32,593 bases of DNA from Octopus bimaculoides (lineage: Eukaryota). The number at the start of each line of letters is the position of its first letter. The first letter of the stretch is position 1. Below the pieces are notes generated by a model. The model did no database searches, had not been told where the DNA came from, and was given only the letters and a program-made list of their open reading frames with translations. Positions 1,953 through 32,393 of this stretch are shown one piece after another. The position numbers and the translations under genes were made by a program. Location of the stretch: the NCBI RefSeq assembly GCF_001194135.2, contig NC_068985.1:54822510-54855102 (forward strand), written 5' to 3'.

Positions 1953-3123
1953 GGTGCTAGCTGGCAGAATTGTTACTGTTCTGGAAAAAAATGCGTAGCA
2001 GCATTTCTTCCAGCTCTACATTCTGAATTCAGGTGTTACTGAGGTTGACTTTGCCTTCTATCCTCTCAGAGCTGATGAAATAAGTGTCCATTGAGTACTG
2101 GGGTTAATGTTATTGACTAATACCTTCTCCCCAAATTTCAGGCCTTGTGCCTATAGTAGAAAGGATTATTATTACTAAGGATGCAAGTTGGCAGAATTGT
2201 TACCACACTGGACAAAATGCTTGGTCATATTTCTTCCAGCTCTTTACATTCTGAATTCAAATGCTACTGAAGTTAGCTTTGTCTTTCATCTGTCCAGGGT
2301 TGATAAAGTAACATACTATGTTCAATGTAATCAATTCCCCACCACTTCAGAATTTCTGACCTAGTGCCAAAATTTGAAACCAATATTATAATTAAGACAG
2401 TGAGCTGGTAGAATCATTAGCATGCTGGGCAAATCACTTAGTGACATTTCGTCTGACTTCACATTCTGAGTTCAAGTTCCACCGAGGTTGACTTTGCCTT
2501 TCATCCTTTTGGGGTCAATAAAATAAGTGTCAGTTGAAGACTGGGGGCAATGTAATTGACCTATGCTCTCCTCCAAACTTGCTGGCCTTGTGCCAAAATT
2601 TGAATATTATTATAATTATTTGAATCTTGAAAATTGCCTTTCGTCCTTTTGTGGTTGATAAATTCAATACAATAAAGTATGAGTCCAATATTGAGGATGA
2701 TGTAATCCACTAATCTGCTCCCACCAAATTTCAGGCCTTATGCATATTTGTGAAAGAATTATTGTTATTTTTATTAAAAGGTGGCGAGCTGGCAGAGTCA
2801 TTAGCACATCGGGCAAAATGTTTAGCAGAATTTCATCTGACTTTATGTTCTGAATTCTAATTCCACTGAGATCACCTTTGCCTTTCATCCTTTCGGGGTG
2901 AATAAAATAGGTACTAGTTGAGCACTGAGGTCAATGTAATTGATTTACCCGTCTCACCTGAAATTGCTGGCTTTGTGCCAAAATTTGAAACCATTTATTA
3001 TTAAAATTAGTGAGGTGATAGAATTGTTAGTGTCAGATTAGATGCTTAGTGATATTTCTTGAGGCTCCATATGTTCTAAGTTCAAATTCTACTGAGGTCA
3101 ATTTTGTCTTTCATCCTTTCAAG
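1953..3123 (+). mobile_element. Head-to-tail stack of about six tRNA-derived SINEs (family A)
   Basis: Repeated GAGCTGGCAGAA head, CTGAGTTCAAATTC B-box-like motif, GCCTTTCATCCTTTCGGGGTCGATAAA core and ATT-rich tails. Unit starts are near 1953, 2176, 2393, 2630 (partial), 2776 and 3003. Confidence 0.85.
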
Positions 3124-4889: not shown

Positions 4890-5195
4890 TTGATTTTGGG
4901 ATGTTGAGTCTCACAGAGGCGATGACAAGTGATCGAGGCCTTTGGCAATTTATTGTATTCAAGAAGACATGTCAAGCCAAGTGAGATCATAGTCATGGTT
5001 AGTGCTGGTGACATGTACAAGTGGTGACTACTCTTCGAGTAGTTGGCATTAGGAATGGCATCCAGCTGTAGAAGCCAAGCCAAATCAGACTGGATCCTGA
5101 TATAGCCCTTTAATTTACCATTCCCAATTAAACTGTCTAAACCATGCCAGCATGGAAAATGGATGCTAAATGATGATGGTGATGATGATAATGAC
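4890..5195 (+). mobile_element. SINE family C fragment (AGGAAGGGCATCCAGCTGTAGAA-type 3' region ending in (GAT)n)
   Basis: Shares tail motifs with the copies at 10766, 11064, 14920, 21075 and 21835. Confidence 0.7.
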
Positions 5196-5576
5196 GAAGT
5201 ATTTTAAAATAAATTAAATATTTTTGTTTAATGCTTTACTGTTTGTGTGCAAGAAAAATGTCTTTGTACATGACACCACACAACCACATATCCATGCAGC
5301 CACATACCCACACAGCCATGTATTTATGTCCTACTGTTTAATCATGCAGCTTCATCTGAATCACAAAACTAAGGCAGGCATAAAAGATATTTCTGACAAA
5401 GACACTATTTATAGAATCACATGTCATTATAAGAAATGAAGATCTTGTCTAAAGATCTTTTATTGTTGCTGTCAGTGGTTTAGAACAGCTGTTCTCAAAC
5501 TGTGCACCACAAGGGATGTCTAGATGAATCTTGGATTAAAAAAGATATATTTTAAGGCTTAAGAAAAGCTATATTC

Positions 5577-5760
5577 TTTTCTAATCTAGGCACAAGGCAC
5601 AAAACTTTTGGGGAGGGGGGCTAGTCGATTAGATCAACCCCAGTATGCAACTGGTATTTAATTTATCAACTCCGAAAGGATGAAAGGCAAAGTTGACCTC
5701 AGCAGAATTTGAACTCAAAACGTAAAGACAGACAAAATACCACTAAGCATTTCGTCCGGC
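5577..5760 (-). mobile_element. Family A SINE, reverse orientation, 5' end clipped by the adjacent MITE
   Basis: Its reverse complement matches the 25677-25910 copy (GAAAGGATGAAAGGCAAAGTTGACCTC...GAATTTGAACTC on the + strand). Confidence 0.85.
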
Positions 5761-7250: not shown

Positions 7251-7306
7251 TCTTGCAAACTTCAATTAAAAACAGAAAGAATGTATAAAGAAATGGAAAA
7301 TTGTTA

Positions 7307-8534
7307 TATGAGGGCCAGTTGAAAAGTCCATAGGCTGACCAAGATATCTTCATGGAATGTGACCAAATGAAATTTATTATTCAATATAGCACCCCCTTGT
7401 GGTCCATACACTTTTTCCATTGGTGTTGCAGTGCTTGGGTCTTTTATCAAAAACTTCATCAACACTGTGATACTGGTTCCCAGCCAAGTGTTTTTTTTTT
7501 TATGTTGGGCCAAATCACAAGAATAGAGATGGTGGTCAACCAGTTCAAAGCCACAGTGACATGCAGCAGTCAGGACTGGTGTGCTGGAGCATAGTCCTGA
7601 TGAAACAAGACCTCTTTCACCAGTTTTGTTGGATGTTTGGTCTTGATAGCCTTTCATAACTGCCTCAGCAAGTTAGCATAGTACTCTCCATTGATGGTAT
7701 TGCCTTTTGAAGATAGTCTGTAAACACAATGCTTTTTGCATCCCAAAAAACTGAGGCCATCCCCTTCTATGCTGGTGAATGACTTTGGATTCTTTGGAGC
7801 AAGAGAGGAGGGGTTTTTCCACTGAATGGATTGTTTCTTTGTATCTGTCTCAAAGTGATGAACCCAACACTCATCCTGCGTTAGGAAATGTTCAAGGATA
7901 CTAGCTGGTTCTACCTCAAATAATATCAGATTTTGCCATGATGTGATCAGCCTGGTGCACTTTTGATCAGGTGTTAGATGTGGCAACCACTGAGCAGAAA
8001 CCTTTGTCATGCCAAGTCCATTTTGTAGAATATTCTCAACTCTCTCATGGGATATGCTATTTACATTGGCTATTTTATTTATTGTTAGTCGCCTGTTATC
8101 CATCACCATGTGGTGAACACAAGCAATGTTTTTCTTGGTGGTGGCAGTTGCAGGATGTCCGGCCATTGAGTGATCTTCAAGATTCTCTCTTCCCCTCTTA
8201 AATTCAACTGCCCACTTTTGCACTGTTGATAAAGCTGGAGTGTCATCCCCTAATGTAACAACCATGTCAGCATGAATATCCTGGTGGTTGGGGGTTAAAC
8301 CCTTTTTCAGCAGGTACTACTTGATAACACCACAATGCCAAATTTTGTTGATTTTCAAGACAAGTCACTACTATTTATTTCTGAAGCCTGTTTTGAACAG
8401 TCAGATGTCAATTTACCTGGAAAGAAACAATGCAATTATTAATAAGAAGTGTTGAAATTAATGAATGCAAGATTTTACAGCTCTAGCATCACTCTTTCAT
8501 AATCAGCCAATGAACTTTTTGTCCCACCTTTGTA
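7307..8534 (-). mobile_element. Decayed mariner (Tc1/mariner, DD34D type) transposon, about 1.23 kb, with imperfect TIRs and TA ends
   Basis: Transposase remnants WLPHL (WVPHEL-like), TQDECWVHHFE, VLFHQDYAPAH and HHLYSCDLAQ (HPPYSPDLAP-like) lie across frameshifts. The TIRs are TATGAGGGCCAGTTGAAAAGTCCATAGGCTGA and TCAGCCAATGAACTTTT...CCTTTGTA. Confidence 0.92.
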
Positions 8535-8875: not shown

Positions 8876-9012
8876 NNNNNNNNNNNNNNNNNNNNNNNNN
8901 NNNNNNNNNNNNNNNNNNNNNNNNNNNNNNNNNNNNNNNNNNNNNNNNNNNNNNNNNNNNNNNNNNNNNNNNNNNNNNNNNNNNNNNNNNNNNNNNNNNN
9001 NNNNNNNNNNNN
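8876..9012. other. Assembly gap (137 N)
   Basis: Run of N. Confidence 1.
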
Positions 9013-10888: not shown

Positions 10889-11063
10889 NNNNNNNNNNNN
10901 NNNNNNNNNNNNNNNNNNNNNNNNNNNNNNNNNNNNNNNNNNNNNNNNNNNNNNNNNNNNNNNNNNNNNNNNNNNNNNNNNNNNNNNNNNNNNNNNNNNN
11001 NNNNNNNNNNNNNNNNNNNNNNNNNNNNNNNNNNNNNNNNNNNNNNNNNNNNNNNNNNNNNNN
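10889..11063. other. Assembly gap (175 N)
   Basis: Run of N. Confidence 1.
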
Positions 11064-11435
11064 TCTTGTGCGGGTGGCACATAAGATGCACCATTTTGAG
11101 CGTGACCGTTGCCAGTGCCGCCTGACTGGCCTTCGTAGGGTTTTCGAGCAAGATCGTTGCCAGTGCCCCTGGACTGGCTTTTGTGTGGGTGGCACATAAA
11201 AGACACCATTTCGAGCGTGGCCGTTGCCAGTACTGCCTGACTGGCCTTCGTGCGGGTGACACGTAAAAGCTCCCACTACACTCTCTGAGTGGTTGGTGTT
11301 AGGAAGGGCATCCAGCTGTAGAAACTCTGCCAAATTAGATTGGAGCCTGGTGTTGCCATCCGGTTTCACCAGTCCTCAGTCAAATCGTCCAACCCATGCT
11401 AGTATGGAAGGCGGACATTAAACGACGATGATGAT
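11064..11435 (+). mobile_element. Family C SINE with internal tandem subrepeats, relatively young
   Basis: Repeated GTTGCCAGT...GACTGGC units, an AGGAAGGGCATCCAGCTGTAGAA motif and a (GAT)n-like tail; CpGs are retained. Confidence 0.85.
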
Positions 11436-13830: not shown

Positions 13831-14070
13831 GGAGTGGCAAGCTGGTTGAATCGTTAATGCACTGGAAAAAATGCTTAGCAGCATTCCTTCAGTTTATACA
13901 TTCTGAGTTCAAATGTCGTCTGGGTTGACTTTGCCTTTTATCCTTTCAGGGTCGATAAAATAAGTACCAGTTGAATGCTGGGGTTGATATAATAGATTAT
14001 CCCCTTCCCCTCAAATCTCAGGCCTTGTGCCTATAATAGAAAGGATTATTATTCTTGTTGTTATTATTAT
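13831..14070 (+). mobile_element. Family A SINE, near full length
   Basis: Head, CTGAGTTCAAAT, GCCTTTTATCCTTTCAGGGTCGATAAAATAAGTACC core, and CTCAGGCCTTGTGCCTATAATAGAAAGGATTATT tail. Confidence 0.85.
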
Positions 14071-14919: not shown

Positions 14920-15160
14920 GGAGGGCTTTTATCTTGCAGGTACCTAGTCAACCTCACTGGTGCTAGTGCCACATAAAACAGCATCCAGTATACTCTGTCA
15001 AGTGGTTGGCATTAGGAAGGGCATCCAACTGTAGAAACCATGCCAGAGCAGACACACAACCTGGCAGAGCCTTCTGGTTCAGCTGTTCATTTCAAGTACT
15101 AGTTGAGAACTGGGGATAGTCTATTACATTGATCCCAGCTCTCAACTGGTACTTATTTCA
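14920..15160. mobile_element. Family C SINE fragment (+) followed by short family A remnants
   Basis: AGGAAGGGCATCCAACTGTAGAAACCATGCC motif. Confidence 0.55.
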
Positions 15161-15329
15161 TGCTAGTATGGTAAAAGGGAGACATTTAATGATGATGATA
15201 ATGTATATATAACCTGTATGGTCTGGCTAAGTCAAAATGGTTTTTTGTATTCCTCCTTTCTACTTGGAGAGTTTAGATTTAATTATAAGAATATGTCCTT
15301 CTGTTTAAATGTAATTTCATTAAATTTCT

Positions 15330-15440
15330 ATATCTTTGTGCAGCTGAAGATTGCTCTACATTTTATATTTGATATAATGTTTACATTGCTCAGTTAAATG
15401 GGGTCGCATGAAACGACTGTACTGCATTAACTTCGGATAT
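15330..15440 (+). ncRNA. Type I hammerhead-ribozyme motif, family A copy 1
   Basis: TGCAG(15339-43)-CTGAAGA(15344-50)-long stem II-GAAA(15410-13)-C...GTA(15419-21)-CTGCA(15422-26), with a distal ATATC/GATAT pairing. The base of stem II is a U-U mismatch. Paired by eye. Confidence 0.65.
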
Positions 15441-15455
15441 CCTTGTTGCTTATTT

Positions 15456-15457
<2 letters not shown>

Positions 15458-15538
<81 letters not shown>
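15458..15538. repeat. (TA)n microsatellite
   Basis: Read directly from the sequence. Confidence 0.97.
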
Positions 15539-15543
<5 letters not shown>

Positions 15544-16044
15544 ACAATAGTTGAGATGATCTGTGATACATCATCTTTATAATTATCTCAGTCTGATGTC
15601 ATTTCATCTGTTTATCACCAACATTGTTTTTTTACTAACCTTCAATCTCTGTGAAATACACATCCCTCATTCCTTCACCTACCTCTCTTTGAACTTTCCA
15701 ACACTGATACATATCACTTTACTCTTTGCATGCAACACATTTTCCAATCTATATAAATTTAATCACTGCATGCAGTGCACCTTCCAGTCTATAAATTTGA
15801 TCCTTTGATCATCTTTGTATCTTAAGAGTAGTCTCTTAACATTTTGTGCACCATTGTGCATATATGTGTGAATGTATATGTGTGTATGTGTGCACGTATA
15901 TGTGTTTATATATAGGTGTGTGTGTATATGTGTGTGTGTATATGTGTGCATGTGTGTATATGTGTGTGTGTGTGTATATATGTGTGTGTATATATATGTA
16001 TGTATGTATGTGTGTATATATATATATGTATATATAATTTTTCT

Positions 16045-16141
16045 ATATCTTTGTGCAGCTGAAGATTGCTCTGCATTTTACATTTAATGTAATGCTCGCA
16101 TTACTTAAATAAATGGAGTGGCATGAAACGTGCGTACTGCA
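16045..16141 (+). ncRNA. Type I hammerhead-ribozyme motif, family A copy 2
   Basis: TGCAG(16054-58)-CTGAAGA(16059-65)-stem II with inner GTAATGC/GCATTAC hairpin-GAAA(16125-28)-CGTGC-GTA(16134-36)-CTGCA(16137-41). Stem III ACGUGCGU is self-complementary if G-U pairs are allowed. Confidence 0.7.
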
Positions 16142-16313
16142 ATAACCTTTAAAATCCGTGTTGCTTTTTTTGATTTTTGATCACCTTGTTTTTGGAATTG
16201 TTTGGATAATACCATACTATATTCTGGTGCCTAAACTTAAGTGCCACATTCAATTTTGAATCTAGATTTTATATATATATTTATCTGTAATATAATATGT
16301 GACAATTATTCGG

Positions 16314-16388
16314 TTGCCATAATAAAACTCCAAGTTTCGGATGTCAGTGTGGAAACCTGTTCCGGCATCTTGTCAGTTATCAAGGCAA
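16314..16388 (-). ncRNA. Hammerhead motif family B, probably inactivated copy (core CUGACAA, i.e. G8A; GUU site)
   Basis: The reverse complement reads TTGCC-ttg-ATAA-CTGACAA-GATGCCGG...CTGACATCC-GAAACTTGGAGTT-TTATT-at-GGCAA. Confidence 0.6.
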
Positions 16389-16629
16389 TCAAAAAAATGC
16401 TATGAAAATGACTGTTAAACAAAGGGAAATTACTATGTAATTGACTGTTATTAAGACAAAAGAGCTATTAGAATGACCGTTAAATAAGGGGAAAAAACCA
16501 AAGGGGAGAAAGTAAAAAGTAAAGAAGTAAAAAAACTCATAGCAATCGCGTATGGGTACATGTACATACATGCACGCATGCACACCCACGTACATGTGCC
16601 AATATGCATATGCTCACTCACACTTGTGT

Positions 16630-17160
16630 GAAACACATACATGCGCACCCGCACATATGCCAATATATGCACATATATATGCAACCATGCATGTACACGT
16701 ATACATATCCACACACACCCATACGCACACAATTATATTCAAATACACCTCTAAAAATACATACATGCTATATATGCATCTACTCACTCACACTCACGTG
16801 AAATCAATGTACATCCACATATATATGCAACCATACACATGTACATATATATACATACGCACACACACACACACAATGTACACATATGCATATCCACACA
16901 CGTGCGCACACACACACACACACACACATACACGTGCACATACCCAAATGCGCACAATTATATTCAAATACACATCTGAAATACGTACATGCTATATATG
17001 CATAAGCTCAATCACACTCACGTGAAACACTCGCGTGTACACCCACATATATAAGCAACCATACACGTGTACATATACATGTACATATATATATACATAC
17101 CCACACGCGCACACACACACACGCACGCACACAAAAAGGTTCATATACACGTCTTTATAC
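16630..17160. repeat. Degenerate tandem units (about 225 bp) rich in CA/TA simple repeats, in the PLE 3' region
   Basis: CACAATTATATTCAAATACAC...CATGCTATATATGCAT...CACACTCACGTGAAA occurs near 16727 and near 16952. Confidence 0.75.
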
Positions 17161-17261
17161 GCACATGCACAAGAAAAATACAGGGTGAAAGGTAAAATAC
17201 AGAAAAAAATGTGTAAAAATATATGAAGCCATAAAAATATAAAAGATATATCTATAGCCAC

Positions 17262-17662
17262 AGGAGTGGCTGTGTAGTAAGTAGCTTGCTTACCAACCAC
17301 ATGGTTCCAGGTTCAGTCCCACTGCATGGCACCTTGGGCAAGTGTCTTCTACTATAGCCTCGGGCTGACCAAAGCCTTGTGAGTGGATTTGGTAGATGGA
17401 AACTGAAAGAAGCCCGTCATATATATGTATACATATATATGTATGTGTGTGTATATGTTTGTGTCTGTGTTTGTCCCCCCAAACATCACAACTGATACTG
17501 GTGTGTTTACGTCCCTGTAACTTAGCGGTTCGGCAAAAAGAGACCGATAGAATAAGTACTAGGCTTACAAAGAATAAGTTCTGGGGTCGATTTGTTCGAT
17601 TAAAGGCGGTGCTCCTGCATGGCTGCAGTCAAATGACTAAGACAAGTAAAAGAGTAAAGAGT
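17262..17662 (+). mobile_element. Family B SINE, young and apparently complete, inserted in the PLE
   Basis: GTGGCTGTGTAGTAAG A-box-like and GGTTCAGTCCC B-box-like motifs, ACCTTGGGCAAGTG (CORE-like), a microsatellite hinge and a (GAGTAAA)-type tail. Confidence 0.9.
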
Positions 17663-17722
17663 ATAAATATGTAAAAAATATATAAAAAATATATGTAAAA
17701 AGTATAGTGAGAGAAAATGCTT

Positions 17723-18514
17723 CTACGTGAACACAATATAAAAAGCAGGTTCTATCTGTGATCTTGGTGGGAGGGGGGACCAAAAACGTAACAAGTATTT
17801 AACCATATGTGGACATGATCCAAAATGTTCAGTTCTTGAATTTAGACATGTAGCTGGGTCTAAGCTGCTTTTCCAGATGAGCCATCTTTCAATATCACAA
17901 AGACTGCACTTTCCACTGCTGTTGGTGTAAGGTTTACACTTGGCTAAGATCTTCCAATGGATGTTGTAACTGACACCTTTATCTTTTAAGGACCATATAT
18001 GACTGGATAATTTGGTCATTTTCCTTTTATCCCAGTGCCTGAAGTTGAAGGTGTGATTGTTGAACCTGGCCTTAAAATTCCCCTCTGTAAGGCCCACATT
18101 GAAAACACCCTCTGTATCAGTAGTCTTGACCCACTCTGCGTTCTCACTGAGGAGTAAAGTCTTTCTAGCATGGAAGATTATGTCCTTATCTTGTGTACTA
18201 ATTTCTATAAATTCGCTTGCGAAGGTGAGGGCTTTATCTAGCAGTTCCCTAGAGATAGAGGCACAGAAATCGACAATATCGAATTGCGTAAATCTCACTT
18301 TATTCTTGTTCCTAATGGCTTTAAACAAGTCAACGACTTCTATACTGTTGGTCCATTGTACTAACCTAGTAGCATTCCTGACTTTCGCATTGATTTTTCC
18401 TAAAATTTCTTTACTAATAATACCAATTTCTGATTTAGCTGGGTTAATATTCCTACATTTAGGATTAGATAGGAAGTTCTTTTTATGGTCCTTGATAGTT
18501 ATAAAGGCCTCTGC
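17723..18514 (-). pseudogene. PLE ORF remnant: RT N-terminal part fused in frame to the GIY-YIG endonuclease C-terminal part
   Basis: AFITIKDHKKNF...PKCRNINPAKSEIG...FTQFDIVDFCASIS (PLE RT motifs up to about motif B) is joined at EGVFNV|GLTEG to FKARFNNH...LSSHIWSLKD...CSLCDIE...LNSRTEHFGSCPH. The catalytic YxDD motif is absent. Confidence 0.85.
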
Positions 18515-18757
18515 GAGTGTGAGTGAGCATATGCATATAGGCACATGTGCATGGGTGTACGTGCGTGCATGTGTATGTATGTTCATGTGCGTATACGCGA
18601 TTACTATGAGCTTTTTTACTTCTTTACTTTTTACTTTCTCCCCTTTGGGTTATTTCCCTTTATTTAACAGTCATTCTAATAGCTCTTTTGTCTTAATAAT
18701 AGTCAATTACATAGTAATTTCCCTTTGTTTAATGGTCATTTTCATAGCATTTTTTGA

Positions 18758-18832
18758 TTGCCTCAATAACTGACGAGATGCCAGAGCAGGTTTCCACACT
18801 GACATCCGAAACTTGGAGTCTTATTATGGCAA
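18758..18832 (+). ncRNA. Type I hammerhead motif family B with intact conserved core (CUGACGA...GAAA...GUC; predicted cut after C18820)
   Basis: Stem I is AATAA(18765-69)/TTATT(18821-25) plus distal TTGCC(18758-62)/GGCAA(18828-32). Stem II is GATGCCAG/CTGACATC with one mismatch and an extra C. Stem III is ACT/AGT. Confidence 0.75.
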
Positions 18833-19905
18833 CTGAATAATTGTCACATATTATATTACAGATAAATTCCTCTATTTACATAATATCGAGGTCTCATTCA
18901 TTCTTTTTTGTCTTACCATTACTATTAATATATATATATATATATATATATAAAGATATTCTATTATATTAAAAGGATTTATTTAGATAACCCTTGTACA
19001 TATGTTTCCATAGTAGATATCCACAAAATATTTAAGAAATAAATATTTGAAAATAAGTATCATTTCCTTGGCATTTGAAATCTGAATAAATGTGTAAGAT
19101 GAAGAAAAACATTGTGCTTGTTATTACAAGTTGAAGAACAATCATACTGTTGAAGTAAAACGAACAAAACAAAACGAAAAAGAACAAAGGAAATAGAATG
19201 GAGTAATGATAATAATGATCAAAACAAAATATGAAAGAAAGATTAAGAACGCATAATAAGTTAATGTACGTACACACACACACACACATTAGTTAGTACA
19301 GTTGATGTCCAGATTTGTGTCCTCATCTGATTTTTTCTCAAAACTTCCCGTAAAGTATTATTACATTCCAGCTGACCAGGATCCTTTATTTTTATTCAAT
19401 TTTATATCTAGATGAATTGCCCATATTTCATGGCTATGCAACAGACTTAGATATGCTTTGTATTATCTGCCTTTTGTCTCTTTTTAAGATTCTTTTTCAG
19501 CAAACCCCTGTTCTGTGTTCACTTTGTCTTTAATAAAATTTCTCATATCATCATTTGAAACTGTTAATACATAAGTGCCTCACAAATGAATGAAACTAAG
19601 ACAGTGGCTTTATACCAAACATGAAACTAGAATTCATGCAAGATGAAGGAGTCTATATACAGTACATATGGCAGCCAAAATTCCCTCAAATCACACCTTA
19701 CCATCTTTAAAAAAGGGAAGGATATATTAGATGATGTAGTTTGGTCAGAGCTGGAATATCTTTGATCATAGGCTTCTTGATTGGGAATGACCTGGGGCTA
19801 AACAATTACAAGAGTGCTTCATTGTGGGTTCTTGACTTTTAATTTCTGTCTTTATTAATTTAGTCTTTCACCTGCTTATAGCACCAATACCTGTTTTGTA
19901 TGATG

Positions 19906-20400
<495 letters not shown>

Positions 20401-21074: not shown

Positions 21075-21430
21075 AATGATATTTACCGATGTCATGTAAC
21101 TGGCACCTGTGCTGGTGGCACATAAAAAACATCTTTTGAGTGTTGGGCCTCATGGAGGCAATGACAAATGACCAAGACAAGTGAAATGTCAAGCCAAGTG
21201 GAATCATAGTCATGGTAGATACTGGTGTCACGCAACTGGCACCCATATGCACTCATATATGCACCCATTACATTCTTGAAGTGGTTGGTGTTAGGAAGGG
21301 CATCCAACTGTAGAAACCATGCCAAATCAGACTGGAGTCTGGTGTAGCCCCTCTGCTTACCAGTCGTGGTCAGACTGTCCAACCCATGCCAGCATGGACA
21401 ATGGATGCTAAATGATGATGATGATGATGA
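21075..21430 (+). mobile_element. Family C SINE
   Basis: AGGAAGGGCATCCAACTGTAGAAACCATGCCAAATCAGACTGGAG...CCATGCCAGCATGG...(GAT)n. Confidence 0.8.
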
Positions 21431-22470: not shown

Positions 22471-22662
22471 CTTTAGTTGCTGGCCTTGTGCTAAAATTTG
22501 AAACCATTATTGATAGAAATAGCTCCCCTAACTCTGCTACAAGACAGTAAGTAGAGGGTCATTAGACCTTTTATTAGCAATTTGTTGAAACAATTCAACT
22601 TGGTTTTCAGAATTGTACTGTATATTACTGTTTTCAAATATTTACCATCTTTAATTTTTCAG

Positions 22663-22851
22663 CGGATGTCACTGCTGTCAGGCTTCATACTTCAAGTAAA
22701 CTCCGTTCTTAAAATAGAACCAGTTCCTATAGAGTTGCCAAAGACTGATTCCAAGGGAAAGGAAACTCTATGTATTGAAGCACCATCAATCTACAGTGGC
22801 TTAACTAATCTTCAGTTCCGTTTGTTGTCATTTCATCTCCTTCAAGGACAG
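22663..22851 (+). CDS. LIPE: Hormone-sensitive lipase-like gene, first exon visible in window (end of HSL N-terminal domain), phase 0-0
   Basis: Acceptor ttttcag and donor gtaagt. The 63 codons RMSLLSGFILQVNSVLKIEPVPIELP...LQFRLLSFHLLQGQ resemble the mammalian HSL segment ending VRLISYDLREGQ. Confidence 0.85.
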
Positions 22852-22924
22852 GTAAGTATCATCATTATTACCAAATTTAGATAAAAGAATCTTTCTTCAA
22901 AAAGATTTTATAACAGGTACAAAT

Positions 22925-23110
22925 ATATGTGTGTGGCTAAGAACTTTGTTTCTCAACTACAAGGTTTTGGATTCAGTTTCACTGCGTGGTAACTAGGGCA
23001 AGTGTCTTCCTCTATAGCCTCAGGCTGACCTAAGCCTTATGGGTGGATTTGGACAAAAACTGAAAGAAGCCTATCATACATATGTATGTGTATGTGCGTG
23101 TGTGTATTTT
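22925..23110 (+). mobile_element. Family B SINE head plus microsatellite
   Basis: GTGTGGCTAAGAAC...GGGCAAGTGTCTTCC...CTGAAAGAAGCC. Confidence 0.75.
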
Positions 23111-24298: not shown

Positions 24299-24421
24299 GA
24301 AAAACTTTTAAAAGACCACCTAATTATCCGTCTACCAAGCAAAGCACAGCCACCATCACCTAACCTACTCTTCCATATTCATGGTGGAGGGTTTGTTGCT
24401 CAGTCTTCAAAGTCCCATGAG
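24299..24421 (+). CDS. LIPE: HSL exon with HGGG oxyanion-hole motif, phase 0-0
   Basis: Acceptor ttttacag and donor gtaaga. Translates as EKLLKDHLIIRLPSKAQPPSPNLLFHIHGGGFVAQSSKSHE, matching HSL HFHGGGFVAQTSRSHE. Confidence 0.95.
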
Positions 24422-24676
24422 GTAAGATTTTTTTTTGACTGACTCTATGTGCTCTTCCATTTTCTGTATTGTTTCTGTGAGGTCCTTCTCACTGTTAACC
24501 CTTTGTTAAATGTGAATGTTGAAACGATGTGGCTGCCTTTTTTGTTTCCATGGAGATTTCTGTTGTTTTCATCATTTTGGGTTTTAGTTTTTTTCTTTGT
24601 GTTTTTGTTTAGTCATGTTTATTTGTTTGTTTTTGTCGTTTGTCTGTAAATATTTTCTTTGTGTTTGGAGTACTCT

Positions 24677-25676: not shown

Positions 25677-25910
25677 AAAGGCAGCGAGCTGACAGAAACA
25701 TTAGCATGCCGGGCGAAATGCTTAGCAGTATTTCGTCTGCCGTTACGTTCTGAGTTCAAATTCCGCCGAGGTCGACTTTGCCTTTTATCCTTTCGGGGTC
25801 GATAAATTAAGTACCAGTTACGCACTGGGGTCGATTTGATCGACTTAATCCGTTTTTCTGTCCTTGTTTGTCCCCTCTATGTTTAGCCCCTTGTGGGCAA
25901 TAACGAAAAA
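25677..25910 (+). mobile_element. Young full-length family A SINE with a perfect 20-bp target-site duplication
   Basis: The TSD AGATATATTACTGCACATTA is at 25657-25676 and 25911-25930. The body is CpG-rich, with an intact B-box-like GAGTTCAAATTCC. Confidence 0.95.
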
Positions 25911-26034: not shown

Positions 26035-26179
26035 GTTTACCTCCGTCAATGGGCTCATGACCTCAAAGTGCCAATTGTGTCTGTAGATTATTCTCTGGCA
26101 CCAGAAAACCCATTTCCACGAGCTTTAGAAGAATGTTTTTATCTTTATGCTTGGGTTTTGAAAAATCCTGAACAAGTTG
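26035..26179 (+). CDS. LIPE: HSL exon, phase 0-1
   Basis: Acceptor ttctag and donor gtatgt. Translates as [48 protein letters not shown](G), matching [23 protein letters not shown]. Confidence 0.95.
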
Positions 26180-26239
26180 GTATGTATAAAAATAGAAATT
26201 TTGCTACAATTAAAGTTTTTAGTTTTAAAAATTATTCAT

Positions 26240-27855: not shown

Positions 27856-28029
27856 TGTGTGTGTGTGTATGTATCTACACATAGCTAACATTAATGTTAT
27901 GAGCATTACAGAATTCATGATACTTATGTATGCTTGGGAAATGTTGTTTCATTAGGAAAGGGAAATTTCTAGGTTAGTGGATGCATCAAAAGTGCATGGA
28001 GGATTGAACCAGATCACCTTTCTCTTTTT

Positions 28030-28260
28030 AACTCACTGGGGTAAGGACCTTAATTTATGAGTAAAGCCACTTCTTACTAGTGCCTTGTTGAAGGTCTTTC
28101 TGCTGATGCTTGTGACTAGGTTTCTAATTACAGCTGATGGTGACTGATTTGAGTTTCTATAGATGTAAGCAGTTTCATTATTACATTTTCTGTAGGGATA
28201 ATATTTACCTGTCCAGAGGTCTAGGATGGCATCTAAGAAGTTGACATTGGATAAGTTTGG
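28030..28260 (-). mobile_element. Old PLE RT C-terminal (palm end/thumb) fragment
   Basis: NLSNVNFLDAILDLWTGKYYPYRKCNNETAYIYRNSNQSP...FNKALVRSGF resembles the PLE motif VNFLDVTLxLxxGxYxPYRKPNxxxxYIxxxSNHPP. Confidence 0.75.
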
Positions 28261-28354
28261 TGGAAACAACCATACTCAGGCCATTTTCTCATGTTTGTAA
28301 ACACATATGCATATATGTATATATATTTTACTATTGTGTTATTTATTTTCCTAG

Positions 28355-28573
28355 GTTGGACTGGAGAGAGAATCTGCTTTACTGGTGACAGTGCTGGTGG
28401 AAATCTGGTTTTGGCGGTGACACTGCGTGCCATTGACTCTAATATTCGTATCCCAGATGGAATCCTAACTGTATACACATCAGCACTAATCAGTATAGTT
28501 CCATCCCCATCTCGTCTACTTAGTGTTATGGATCCATTGCTACCTGTTGGTGTCATGCTCAAATGTTTAGATG
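28355..28573 (+). CDS. LIPE: HSL exon with catalytic Ser (GDSAG; Ser codon 28390-28392), phase 1-1
   Basis: Acceptor ttcctag and donor gtaaga. Translates as (G)WTGERICFTGDSAGGNLVLAVTLRAIDSNIRIPDGIL...PSPSRLLSVMDPLLPVGVMLKCLD. Confidence 0.96.
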
Positions 28574-28734
28574 GTAAGAAATACTTTGAAATACTTAATA
28601 GATTCGTATTTCCTTAGTTTAAACATCTTTCTATAACTGGTAAGCCTTAACAGATTAAGGAAAATATAAAGCAGTCCTTATTTGTGTGTGTGTGTGAGAG
28701 TGAGTGTATGTGTGAGTGTGTGTATCTATATGTA

Positions 28735-28943: not shown

Positions 28944-29850
28944 GTGTCCCATAAAGCTAGGGATATAGAAACACTGTGTCCTGTAGAACTGAGGCCATAA
29001 TAGCCTGAAGAGTGAAACCTGTCAAAACATTGTGCCCCATAGAAACACTGTGACCTGTAGAGCAACGGCTATAAAACTTTGATCCAAACAACTAAGGTGA
29101 TAGAAACTGTAACCCATAGAGTTCAGACTATAAAACAGTGTATTCCATAGAGCCAAAACTTAAGAACATGTATCGCTTTGTGCTGAGCCTTATTGGGCTA
29201 AAGCTGTAGGAGATCTTGATCCATAGAGCTAAGGTTATAGAGACAATGTGTCCTATAGAACTGGAGTCATAGAACACTGTTCTGTAGAGGTAAGCCTATA
29301 GAAAACTATGTCTCTTAGAGCTAATGCAATAAAATTCATGTCCCATAGAGTTCAGGCTACAGAAAAACTTACTCAGAAGAGCTAAGGCTGTAGAAAAACT
29401 GTCTTGTAGAATTACATAGAACTGTCTTGTAGAATTACATAGAACTGTCTTGTAGAATTACATAGAACTGTCTTGTAGAATTACATAGAACTGTCTTGTA
29501 GAATTACAAAGAACTGTCTTGTAGAATTACATAGAACTGTCTTGTAGAATTACATAGAACTGTCTTGTAGAATTACATAGTCCTATAGGGCTAAGCCTGT
29601 ACAATACTGTGTCCCATAGACTATAAAATCACTGTGTTTCATAGGCCTAAGGTTAGAGAAATTGCATCAGAGCACTAAGGCTGCAGAACACTGCTCCATA
29701 GAGCTATGGGTATAGAAACTATGTCCTATAGAGCTAAGATGATAACAAAACTGTTCCATAGACCTAAAACTTTAGAACAGTGTGTTCTGAAGAGCTAACT
29801 GTCTGTTGTATATTGCAAAGGCCATACAAACTAAGGCTATAGATATAGTG
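28944..29850. repeat. Old degenerate minisatellite of about 31-bp units (CCATAGAGCTAAGGCTATAGAAACACTGTGT-like)
   Basis: CCATAGA / GCTAAGG / TATAGAAA motifs recur throughout. The period was estimated by eye. Confidence 0.75.
29399..29580. repeat. Near-perfect 23-bp tandem array, about 8 copies (CTGTCTTGTAGAATTACATAGAA)
   Basis: Unit starts at 29399, 29422, 29445, 29468, 29491, 29514, 29537 and 29560, with one T>A variant. Confidence 0.97.
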
Positions 29851-29909: not shown

Positions 29910-30114
29910 CCTACATTGGAACAAGTACTGTCTCTAGTGACTATTGCAACCAACCAGTTCTGGAAGAAGACTGTGAAACTCCTTCAACAGAGAAAGATGA
30001 TGATTCTTTGGACAATTCTAGAAAAATCAAAGAGGTTAACAGTTACGATTGTGAAACTTCTGAATCTTTATCTTCAGATTTGACTGAATTCTTTTCTCCT
30101 GATGACAGTGATGA

Positions 30115-30148
<34 letters not shown>

Positions 30149-30487
30149 GGTGGTGATGATCAAAAGACAAATTCACATCTCCCTAAACAGTATTTACCTC
30201 ATGATTCTTACTATATTCCCGGGGCTGACTTACCTCTTTCATCTGCTTCATCTCCTGGTCATGTGCCTCATCCTGATGGTCAGCTACCCCGCAGCCTTTC
30301 TACTCCAGTATTCAACAAAACTGAAAATGTTCATCTTCGACCCCCACATCATTCTTCCTTTGATTCTTCTAATGTACAATCAGCCATGGAACGGTTCCTC
30401 AAACTGACTCTCATCCAAAATCCTTTAGTCTCCCCTATATATGCCACTGACAAACAGCTCCAAATGTTCCCTGAGGTCAGCTTAGTG
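29910..30487 (+). CDS. LIPE: HSL exon encoding the regulatory insertion and the return to the catalytic domain, phase 1-0
   Basis: Acceptor tttttcag and donor gtaagt. Open for 578 nt in the required phase, from (A)YIGTSTV... through an acidic/Ser-rich region to ...IQNPLVSPIYATDKQLQMFPEVSLV (HSL KNPFMSP motif). Confidence 0.92.
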
Positions 30488-30537
30488 GTAAGTACAAGCA
30501 AAACTTTTTATAAAAGTGTTTTTCTCTTTATATATAG

Positions 30538-30580
<43 letters not shown>

Positions 30581-31099
30581 TGCATATATATATATATATA
30601 CATGAGTATATATATATATATATATATGCATACACATATATTTAATATAAGAGGCATACATGAGCTACTTCAAGTTTCTACTTTGTGCAGTAATCAGCTG
30701 GGCTTGTATAGCACACTGTGCATGATCAGTACACTATACAAGCCCATCTGATCTAACCATGAAACTTTAAGTAGCTCGTTTATAACTCCTGTATTGACTA
30801 AATGATATTTCTCTCTTGTGGAATGGAGTGTTTTTTTTTTTTTTGGCTGATCCTATCAACAAGCTAACTATATGTCTTTCTCAATAAATGAGTGACAAAA
30901 TAAAAAGAGTTATATAATCACTAAGTGTATGCTATAAATAAGTGTGTACCCTGAGCTGAGTGCCAATGTGACATCCTATAGCTTCCTCGGAGCCATTCGT
31001 TAAATGATTTTACACTCTATACTGGTCTGATGGTTTACTGTAAAGTATAAGTATGATGACGTTTAACCAACTGGTTATTAATATTTCTATGGCTAAATG

Positions 31100-31391: not shown

Positions 31392-31580
31392 TTTAGCATG
31401 CCGGGCAAAATGTTTAGTGGTATTTCATCTGTCTTTATGTTGAATTCAAATGCTGTCAAGGTTGGCTTTGCCTTTCATCCTTTCAGGGTTGATAGTATAA
31501 GTACCAGTTGATCATTGGGGTCAATGCAATCAACTTATGCCCTCCTCCAAAATTTCAGGTCATAATAGAAAGGATTGTTT
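31392..31580 (+). mobile_element. 5'-clipped family A SINE
   Basis: TTAGCATGCCGGGCAAAATG...GCCTTTCATCCTTTCAGGGTTGATAG...AATTTCAGG...AGAAAGGATT. Confidence 0.8.
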
Positions 31581-32195
31581 ATACAGCAGTTAAGTTCTGA
31601 TAGATTTAAAAATTTATTTTGCATGTGATATATCTATGTGTTGAGTTTTGGTTTGTATTTTTTATAACAAACCAATATTATTTTTTTAGAATATGTCTGT
31701 CCCTGTCTCATATTAGGGATATTCAGCAGCTATTATGTAATTGTGATGGCAATTTGGTAAAACACATTCAAGTTCTATAAAGCATTGAATACCATACTTT
31801 TTTCTGTATTTTATTAATACTATGACGTGGCTCATATTCCACTAGCCTGTCCTTAGGTGATGTTCCATATCATATACAGGAGTGGAGTGAGGGACACACT
31901 GTTAAGCCTGAATTTTGGTTATGTGTTGCACTTCACAACACAGATTCTCTATATATGCACATATGTTATAGACATATGTGTGTGTGTGAACATTTCATTG
32001 TTGTTTATCTCTAGAATGCTAATTGCTTTTGTTGCTTTCTTGTGCTGAGTCTGAAATTTGGTTACTCGTCATTCTTCACAGTGCATATATTCTCTGTATA
32101 CATACTTACATTACACACACACACAGAGGTATGTGTGTGAGTGTGAACATTTTCAGCTTATCTCTACAGTGTTGTTTTTGTTTCTTTATCTGCAG

Positions 32196-32393
32196 ACATG
32201 TCACCTTGATCCCCTGCTTGATGATTCTGTGATGTTGTGCAAGAGACTGAGACAACTTGGTAAAACTGCTGACTTCACGGTTCTGGACGATCTCCCTCAT
32301 GGATTCCTCAATTTTGTCCTTGTCAGTAAAGACGCACGACAGGGTTCAAATGTGTGTGTTGAAAAGTTGCGCAAATTGTTTAATCTCATCTAA
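32196..32393 (+). CDS. LIPE: HSL terminal coding exon with catalytic Asp (32208-32210) and His (32298-32300); TAA stop
   Basis: Acceptor tctgcag. Translates as TCHLDPLLDDSVMLCKRLRQLG...DDLPHGFLNF...KLFNLI*, matching HSL LDPMLDDSVML and DLPHGFL. Confidence 0.96.
   Translation, partial: TCHLDPLLDDSVMLCKRLRQLGKTADFTVLDDLPHGFLNFVLVSKDARQGSNVCVEKLRKLFNLI

Follow-up and report, generated by a model that had tools for sequence, protein, structure and literature searches.

Does a pair of short direct repeats in the genome of Octopus bimaculoides carry hammerhead ribozymes, and what kind of element would have left them there? The repeats lie near the middle of a stretch of 32,593 nucleotides from contig NC_068985.1 (positions 54,822,510 to 54,855,102), which is referred to here as the window and whose numbering is used throughout. 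A first-pass annotation had read the pair as a candidate retrozyme-like circular RNA unit. Our analysis suggests that the locus may be the fossil of a non-autonomous, ribozyme-bearing element of the Penelope/retrozyme type that was inserted as a more-than-unit copy, a reading in which we place about as much confidence as doubt. We provisionally file the two repeats as functioning like the pseudo-long terminal repeat (pseudo-LTR) pair of a retrozyme or Penelope-like element (PLE), of which they would be putative members. The features of the repeat pair are as follows.

15326 to 15459, plus strand: direct repeat copy 1, a pseudo-LTR-like terminal repeat with hammerhead-like motif 1; 82% identity to copy 2.
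15339 to 15426, plus strand: hammerhead-like motif 1, from sequence reading, a descriptor scan and a constrained fold; predicted cleavage between 15421 and 15422.
15351 to 15409, plus strand: helix II of motif 1, a long imperfect hairpin with U.U at 10.1/11.1, which folds alone like that of copy 2.
15422 to 16136, plus strand: hypothetical 715-nt RNA from double cleavage, by arithmetic on the two A17 positions.
15458 to 15538: (TA)40 microsatellite, adjoining repeat copy 1 on its 3′ side.
15855 to 16033: TG/TA compound microsatellite, adjoining repeat copy 2 on its 5′ side.
16041 to 16174, plus strand: direct repeat copy 2, with hammerhead-like motif 2; 82% identity to copy 1.
16054 to 16141, plus strand: hammerhead-like motif 2, same layout at +715, with a constrained fold; predicted cleavage between 16136 and 16137.

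Each repeat is 134 nt long, and the two are identical at 110 of 134 positions. Because the copies align without indels, the offset between them is exactly 715 nt. A 715-bp unit with a GC content of 29% is thus present as about 1.19 head-to-tail copies, and its first 134 bp therefore recur as a pseudo-LTR. The copies differ at 24 positions, 15 of them transitions, and these differences are distributed over the helix II interior (13 of 59 nt), the helix III loop (3 of 4) and the 3′ flank (8 of 33). The first-pass description of tandem repeats of about 135 bp spaced by exactly 715 nt is confirmed by these figures, and the inter-copy divergence of 18% agrees with its suggestion that the element is old.

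Both repeats contain the full 11-nt catalytic core of a hammerhead ribozyme as well as A15.1-U16.1 and an A at H17; the conserved positions C3-A9, G12-A14, A15.1, U16.1 and H17 are all present and identical in the two copies. In copy 1, the 5′ strand of stem I (UGCAG, 15339-15343) pairs over 5 bp with its 3′ strand (CUGCA, 15422-15426). The C3-A9 segment CUGAAGA (15344-15350) is followed by helix II (15351-15409) and by GAAA (15410-15413), which supplies G12-A14 and A15.1. C15.2 (15414), the loop GACU (15415-15418), G16.2 (15419) and U16.1 (15420) then form helix III and lead to A17 at 15421. Every motif position of copy 2 is found at +715 (core at 16059, GAAAC at 16125, A17 at 16136), and its helix III loop reads GUGC. 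In both copies a tetraloop is closed by the 2 bp of helix III, A15.1-U16.1 and C15.2-G16.2. With the RNA ends in stem I, the motifs have type I topology. Two type I cores at these coordinates had been proposed from the first reading, together with a 715-nt product spanning 15422-16136, and both proposals are correct, the latter from the A17 positions of the two copies. The strand that forms stem III in copy 2, ACGUGCGU, had been called self-complementary with G-U pairs, and it does pair at 8 of 8 positions, two of them G.U, while its counterpart in copy 1, ACGACUGU, pairs at only 6 of 8. Self-complementarity of the inner 4 nt of this strand has a chance probability of about 0.14 and is not statistically notable alone. 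A minimal helix III of this kind would be in keeping with metazoan type I hammerheads that act as dimers.

The sequence directly 5′ of the core is also invariant between the copies (15326-15343 and 16041-16058), and this block, TTTCTATATCTTTGTGCAG followed by the C of the core, resembles a polypyrimidine tract with a CAG 3′ splice acceptor, possibly as a coincidence of AT-rich sequence. In Penelope of Drosophila virilis, the 5′ end of helix I coincides with the end of an intron (PMC4209133).

How readily would such motifs arise by chance? Both strands of the window were scanned with two descriptors, and the results were compared with 200 dinucleotide-preserving shuffles of the window. A strict descriptor (stem I of at least 5 bp, helix III of at least 3 pairs and helix II of at least 3 bp from 10.2) found 2 matches, against an expectation of 0.005 for the window, which corresponds to about 2e-5 for a repeat of 134 nt. 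A loose descriptor found 5 against 0.35 expected, and these correspond to the two motifs, one motif in an adjoining element and two probable chance hits. Because the strict descriptor was written after the motif had been seen, the figure of 0.005 is optimistic and the true chance level lies between those of the two descriptors. The pattern of divergence supports the motif independently of the scan, as the 24 differences spare all 25 positions critical to a ribozyme (hypergeometric p = 0.004, or about 0.03 when the test is restricted to the 3′ half of the motif). A hammerhead core by chance is unlikely.

Helix II provides another line of evidence. Folded alone, the 59-nt segment adopts one long imperfect hairpin architecture in both copies (-7.9 kcal/mol in copy 1 and -16.4 kcal/mol in copy 2) and can form about 20 imperfect bp. 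We aligned the two sequences and scored them on the structure of copy 2. Standard pairs were present in 57 of 60 cells (95%), compared to 28-52% when the partners were slid by 1-3 columns. Pairing is kept in 4 of the 7 changed pairs, through one compensatory double change (G15371-C15391 in copy 1 to A16086-U16106 in copy 2) and three one-sided, wobble-compatible changes between G.U and A-U; the other three pairs are broken in copy 1. We regard this modelled conservation of pairs as suggestive. A shuffle control on the helix II pairs was uninformative (251/500). The first-pass annotation had based its own covariation on the inner part of stem II (AAUGU-UU-ACAUU versus AAUGC-UC-GCAUU). This claim fails, because the quoted change from U15380-A15383 to C16095-G16098 would close a 2-nt loop, which cannot form, and the U-A to C-G replacement is therefore not a valid pair.

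These results bear on the possibility that the locus is an ordinary duplication or unrelated repeat, in which CUGANGA...GAAA...UH and flanking complementarity came together without ever acting as a ribozyme. We consider this unlikely. Loose descriptors do often match AT-rich sequence, as the expectation of 0.35 and the two apparently spurious matches in this window illustrate, and many windows were presumably screened before the motif was picked. Set against this are the rarity of the strict architecture, the sparing of every critical position despite 18% divergence, the helix II pairs that survive change, and a PLE-type hammerhead element that lies immediately alongside.

The sequence between the repeats had been described as non-coding, made up of TA/TG microsatellites and a pyrimidine-rich stretch, and this proved accurate. 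No coding signal was found between the repeats, and the microsatellites enclose a unique interior of about 310 nt (15541-15850) that is 63% pyrimidine. No similarity to reverse transcriptase (RT) or endonuclease (EN) was found between or around the two repeats, and in the window such similarity occurs only at 18068-18592(-) and 27970-28260(-). The unit has neither a primer-binding site (PBS), the position of which is occupied by (TA)n, nor a polypurine tract (PPT). We rejected a reading of the locus as an LTR retrozyme on the grounds that a PBS, PPT, target-site duplication (TSD) and TG..CA ends are all missing. The predicted rod-like fold of the 715-nt RNA (z = -6.9) was likewise discarded as evidence because it is due entirely to pairing of (UA)n with (UG/UA)n.

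Two features of the surroundings favor a Penelope/retrozyme-type element. Both repeats abut TA-rich microsatellites, which are a reported target of PLEs (PMC8557442), and a PLE-like remnant with hammerheads in its arms begins 105 bp past repeat copy 2. The remnant is not part of the 715-nt unit and comprises the following features.

16279 to 18867, minus strand: Penelope-like retroelement remnant; its inverted arms enclose an RT/GIY-YIG-like open reading frame (ORF) with an internal deletion.
16310 to 16389, minus strand: left-arm hammerhead copy on the ORF strand, with its core mutated to CUGACAA (G8 to A) at 16376-16370.
18765 to 18825, plus strand: right-arm hammerhead of minimal type I and more canonical form, from the descriptor scan; CUGACGA at 18770-18776 and GAAA at 18808-18811.

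The arms of this remnant (16279-16499 and 18648-18867) are inverted repeats of 221 bp that are 93.7% identical, and they enclose an ORF at 17723-18586(-). The N-terminal half of the ORF shows 40-55% identity to a family with the RT motifs KDHK...CRLINP.KSE, FDIVxFYPSI and GLYRDDGL in the alignment, and its C-terminal half resembles the tail of a GIY-YIG nuclease. The presence of both parts in one ORF therefore points to an internal deletion. Neither assignment for ORF 17723-18586, RT or GIY-YIG, was confirmed by profile searches of Pfam and PDB, and we therefore use the term Penelope-like on the basis of motifs and architecture. The right-arm hammerhead reads AAUAA / CUGACGA / G10.1...C11.1 / GAAA-C / UUGGA / G-U-C / UUAUU, with G10.1 at 18777, C11.1 at 18807, C17 of the GUC at 18820, and stem I formed by AAUAA and UUAUU. 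Runs of (TA)n flank the remnant at 16270-16279 and 18929-18952. It is like published PLE insertions (PMC8557442) in that one hammerhead lies 3′ of the ORF in sense orientation, a second copy lies upstream in inverted orientation, and (TA)n is found on either side. The Jukes-Cantor distance between its arms is about 0.07, versus about 0.20 between the two direct repeats. The remnant was therefore inserted later and separately, its arms being about three times less diverged. The locus of an RT homologue in an unrelated organism (L001, reached via protein P0001) showed no DNA similarity and no hammerhead motif.

If the repeat pair is a fossil element of the Penelope/retrozyme type, its origin can be outlined from the published PLE/retrozyme model (PMC4209133, PMC7229834, PMC7761336), from which every step below is borrowed; what we see at the locus itself is motifs alone. 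Read-through transcription would produce an RNA longer than one unit. Its hammerheads, in which the 2-bp helix III is weak, would then fold, probably as a dimer through their quasi-palindromic helix III strands, and cleavage would occur 3′ of A15421 and A16136. The released RNA would be circularised by a ligase. RT and GIY-YIG endonuclease supplied in trans by a PLE would copy more than one unit, and integration at a (TA)n microsatellite would generate the terminal redundancy. The copy is old and probably dead because its repeats have diverged by 18% and its interior is filled with microsatellites, and for that reason release of a 715-nt circle is something that we only infer.

Alternatively, a hammerhead element of about 134 bp could have inserted twice, or left two solo remnants, in the same orientation in a microsatellite hotspot. 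Such an element would be a monomeric unit like a retrozyme or SINE (short interspersed element), or else a PLE pseudo-LTR standing alone. The ribozyme motif would then be genuine, but the 715-nt "unit" between the copies would be host sequence and microsatellite. Both copies share their start and end (TTTCTATATC...TTTTGAT), like a discrete element. The (TA)40 tract after copy 1 and the TG/TA repeats before copy 2 resemble target sites, and a third insertion, of PLE type, only 105 bp away makes the region behave as an insertion hotspot. Moreover, PLE mini-hammerheads are mostly single motifs from truncated elements, and the 310-nt interior has no other match in the window by BLAST. Against this, a single more-than-unit insertion is more parsimonious than two that share boundaries and orientation at a distance of 581 bp, except in the case of a very abundant family, and the window holds no third copy, though other repeat families reach 8-10 copies. 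Overall, we judge two insertions to be improbable, on a par with a chance resemblance.

A single Penelope/retrozyme-type insertion has its own difficulties, and the following observations weigh against it. In both copies positions 10.1/11.1 are occupied by U.U (15351/15409 in copy 1), as was noticed from the start. The base of helix II reads A9-U-U-G-C...G-C-A-U-G12, with a symmetric U.U and no G-C, so that the G10.1-C11.1 pair used to recognise PLE mini-hammerheads, in which it is highly conserved (PMC4209133), is absent. The motifs fail 2 of the 4 sequence hallmarks of that class. At 59 nt, helix II is far above the 4-8 bp that have been described, and its pair statistics are weak because there are only two sequences and the structure was taken from one of them. 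Loop-loop tertiary contacts could be proposed for neither motif. The 13 nt 5′ of stem I are as invariant as the core, a conservation not accounted for by a hammerhead. The interior consists largely of microsatellites, and no TSD is seen around the repeat pair (flanking sequences TAAA and TTTT). Metazoan retrozymes have reported monomers of 170-400 nt (about 150-450 bp as the class criterion) and form dimers to large multimers (PMC7229834), unlike the 715-bp period and 1.19 units found here.

Searches for further family members also count against this origin. BLAST of the window with the repeat returned just the two copies and no third, and a core-anchored gapped pattern had no matches in metagenome contigs. 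A 20-mer derived from the repeat had one match in a sequence collection, a GC-rich bacterial chance match (L002). A phmmer search with a 33-aa translation of the repeat gave no matches among 1.84 billion proteins.

The first-pass annotation had proposed that each copy be checked against Rfam hammerhead models and by folding, and neither check favored it. The Rfam hammerhead families had no match in the whole window at the gathering threshold, and none in 1-kb and 121-nt slices at E<=10, where the scans returned just microsatellite-driven mir-297-like noise. The hammerhead conformation is not the minimum free energy (MFE) fold of either copy. When constrained, it reaches -10.2 kcal/mol in copy 1 versus an MFE of -16.4 kcal/mol (6.2 above), and -18.7 versus -21.0 kcal/mol in copy 2 (2.3 above). 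The MFE folds of each copy and its reverse complement are no better than those of shuffles (z of -0.1 to -1.6), and cofolding of copy pairs did not recover the dimeric hammerhead as the MFE. The missing Rfam support, the U.U in place of G10.1-C11.1, the long and imperfect helix II, the unremarkable folds and the invariant block that reaches 13 nt past the motif are also what a chance resemblance would predict. The more canonical hammerhead in the PLE arm, 2.6 kb downstream, was used as a control and had no Rfam match either, so the Rfam negative carries little weight; the mutated left-arm copy likewise escaped Rfam. Rfam is insensitive to the minimal-helix-III class, and a long helix II combined with a minimal helix III lies outside its models. 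MFE folding of the PLE-arm hammerheads was equally uninformative. The retrozyme-like candidate survives in part: complete cores that are unlikely to be chance and the company of a PLE-like remnant speak for it, and the lack of an Rfam match, of a hammerhead MFE fold and of a family member speak against it.

We also asked whether the retrozyme locus might still be active, or whether the host has co-opted the ribozyme, for instance to process transcripts that lie upstream of a neighboring lipase gene or in its 5′ part. Exons resembling hormone-sensitive lipase are found on the plus strand at 22657-22974 (weak), 24320-24424, 26035-26196, 28306-28608 (with the GDSAGG active site), about 30008-30700 (acidic/low-complexity) and 32184-32384 (C-terminal). 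The first exon lies at or before 22657, possibly at 19652, and the ribozyme repeat pair is upstream of all detectable exons. The motifs share the strand of this gene, and the core positions are intact in both copies. In contrast, the 18% divergence of the repeats, the degraded helix II of copy 1 and the microsatellite interior argue against present activity or co-option, which we regard as highly improbable. The evidence at hand does not suggest a role of the element for the lipase gene. The best named relatives of the lipase are molluscan, namely Pecten maximus, a bivalve (42% for the concatenated query and 53-71% per exon), and Solemya velum. The lipase query found no near-identical protein in the searchable collection; the nearest match there was a fragment with 85% identity, carried by a 2-kb contig.

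The remainder of the window is AT-rich and crowded with dispersed repeats. A second fragment akin to the RT family of the PLE remnant lies at 27970-28260(-), just upstream of the active-site exon of the lipase, with 29-46% identity to P0003, P0006, P0007, P0009 and P0012. A mariner/Tc1-like transposase remnant occupies 7304-8265(-) in two ORFs, with weak Pfam matches to HTH_Tnp_Tc3_2, HTH_32 and Transposase_1. A SINE-like dispersed repeat of about 200 bp has at least 8 copies in the window at 70-80% identity (1956-2173, 2403-2613, 2781-3002, 5571-5752(-), 13834-14053, 19906-20080, 25678-25851 and 31395-31579). Copies of a second dispersed family are found at 5032-5188, 11269-11435 and 21261-21430, and a fragmented one at 14960-15212 just upstream of the repeat pair. 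Two tandem arrays are also present, a 37-bp minisatellite at 1013-1713 (19 copies, 74% matches) and a highly regular one of 23-bp units at 29397-29580 (8 copies, 98% matches), the latter within the lipase gene region. Local repeat structure around 9-11 kb is incomplete because of assembly gaps (N) at 8876-9012 and 10889-11063.

What would such an element mean? The argument for novelty made in the first-pass annotation, that no such unit was known from cephalopods, is weak: the giant squid genome has 235 Hammerhead_1 loci (PMC6962438), PLEs have been catalogued in Architeuthis, Euprymna and Octopus (PMC8557442), and mollusc retrozymes are already published. The locus opens no new mechanism and is at best an atypical, apparently dead case of an element kind already published. 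If genuine, it would be one more apparently dead example among the very many hammerhead-bearing PLE/retrozyme sequences of invertebrates. It would also make a modest point for ribozyme censuses, such as that of the giant squid, by showing that Rfam annotation misses hammerheads in which helix II is long and the 10.1/11.1 pair is not G-C. More ambitiously, the pair could represent an undescribed family of mollusc or cephalopod retrozymes with short hammerhead terminal repeats, a non-coding core of about 600 nt, a circle of about 700 nt and a plant-like architecture, whose type I hammerhead, atypical in its U.U at 10.1/11.1 and in an extended helix II of about 20 bp, is missed by Rfam and standard descriptors. 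If this were true, ribozyme-bearing elements would be under-counted in mollusc and cephalopod genomes. We think such a family quite doubtful, more so than either chance or two insertions.

How does the repeat pair compare with known systems? With Rfam hammerhead families such as Hammerhead_1 it shares the consensus of the catalytic core and the type I topology. Like plant LTR retrozymes (PMC4918200), it consists of two hammerhead-bearing direct repeats around a non-coding core, with about 700 nt between the cleavage sites. The plant elements have type III hammerheads, LTRs of about 350 bp, a tRNA-Met PBS, a PPT, a 4-bp TSD and a GC content above 55%, all of which are absent from the unit. The resemblance to PLEs extends further. 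PLEs carry minimal type I hammerheads in the repeats that flank them, and such ribozymes are scattered through metazoan genomes on a massive scale (PMC4209133). As in PLE pseudo-LTRs, the hammerheads here lie in two direct repeats and have a 5-bp stem I, a longer-than-canonical helix II and a minimal helix III, the strand of which is self-complementary in copy 2 and less so in copy 1, with (TA)n alongside and a PLE-like remnant adjoining. Unlike PLE pseudo-LTRs, they enclose no RT/EN ORF, carry U.U for G10.1-C11.1 and have a helix II much longer than 6-8 bp.

The third comparison is with non-LTR retrozymes of metazoans, which are type I hammerheads in head-to-tail non-coding repeats. A coral, a mussel and the axolotl express them as circular RNAs, and PLEs are the proposed agents of their mobilisation (PMC7229834, PMC7761336). 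In these elements helix II is about 4 bp plus a loop, as opposed to 59 nt here, and loop1-loop2 contacts comparable to theirs are not recognisable in our motifs. The unit is non-coding, has a GC content below the 45-50% that marks the class and lacks LTR, PBS and PPT as metazoan retrozymes do. It also shares with them the type I topology, the 2-bp helix III with a tetraloop and, as far as 1.19 units of 715 bp can show one, the head-to-tail arrangement (PMC7229834), and PLEs with minimal hammerheads lie nearby, here in the form of the remnant at 16279-18867. A preprint argues that retrozymes derive from PLE pseudo-LTRs, and the adjoining remnant fits the co-occurrence of retrozymes and PLEs reported there (bioRxiv 10.64898/2026.07.22.740005). 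Finally, helix II of the axolotl retrozyme ribozyme HHR_Amex2 likewise has a U.U mismatch at its base, and this ribozyme cleaves 22% in one hour as a monomer and much better as a dimer (PMC7229834).

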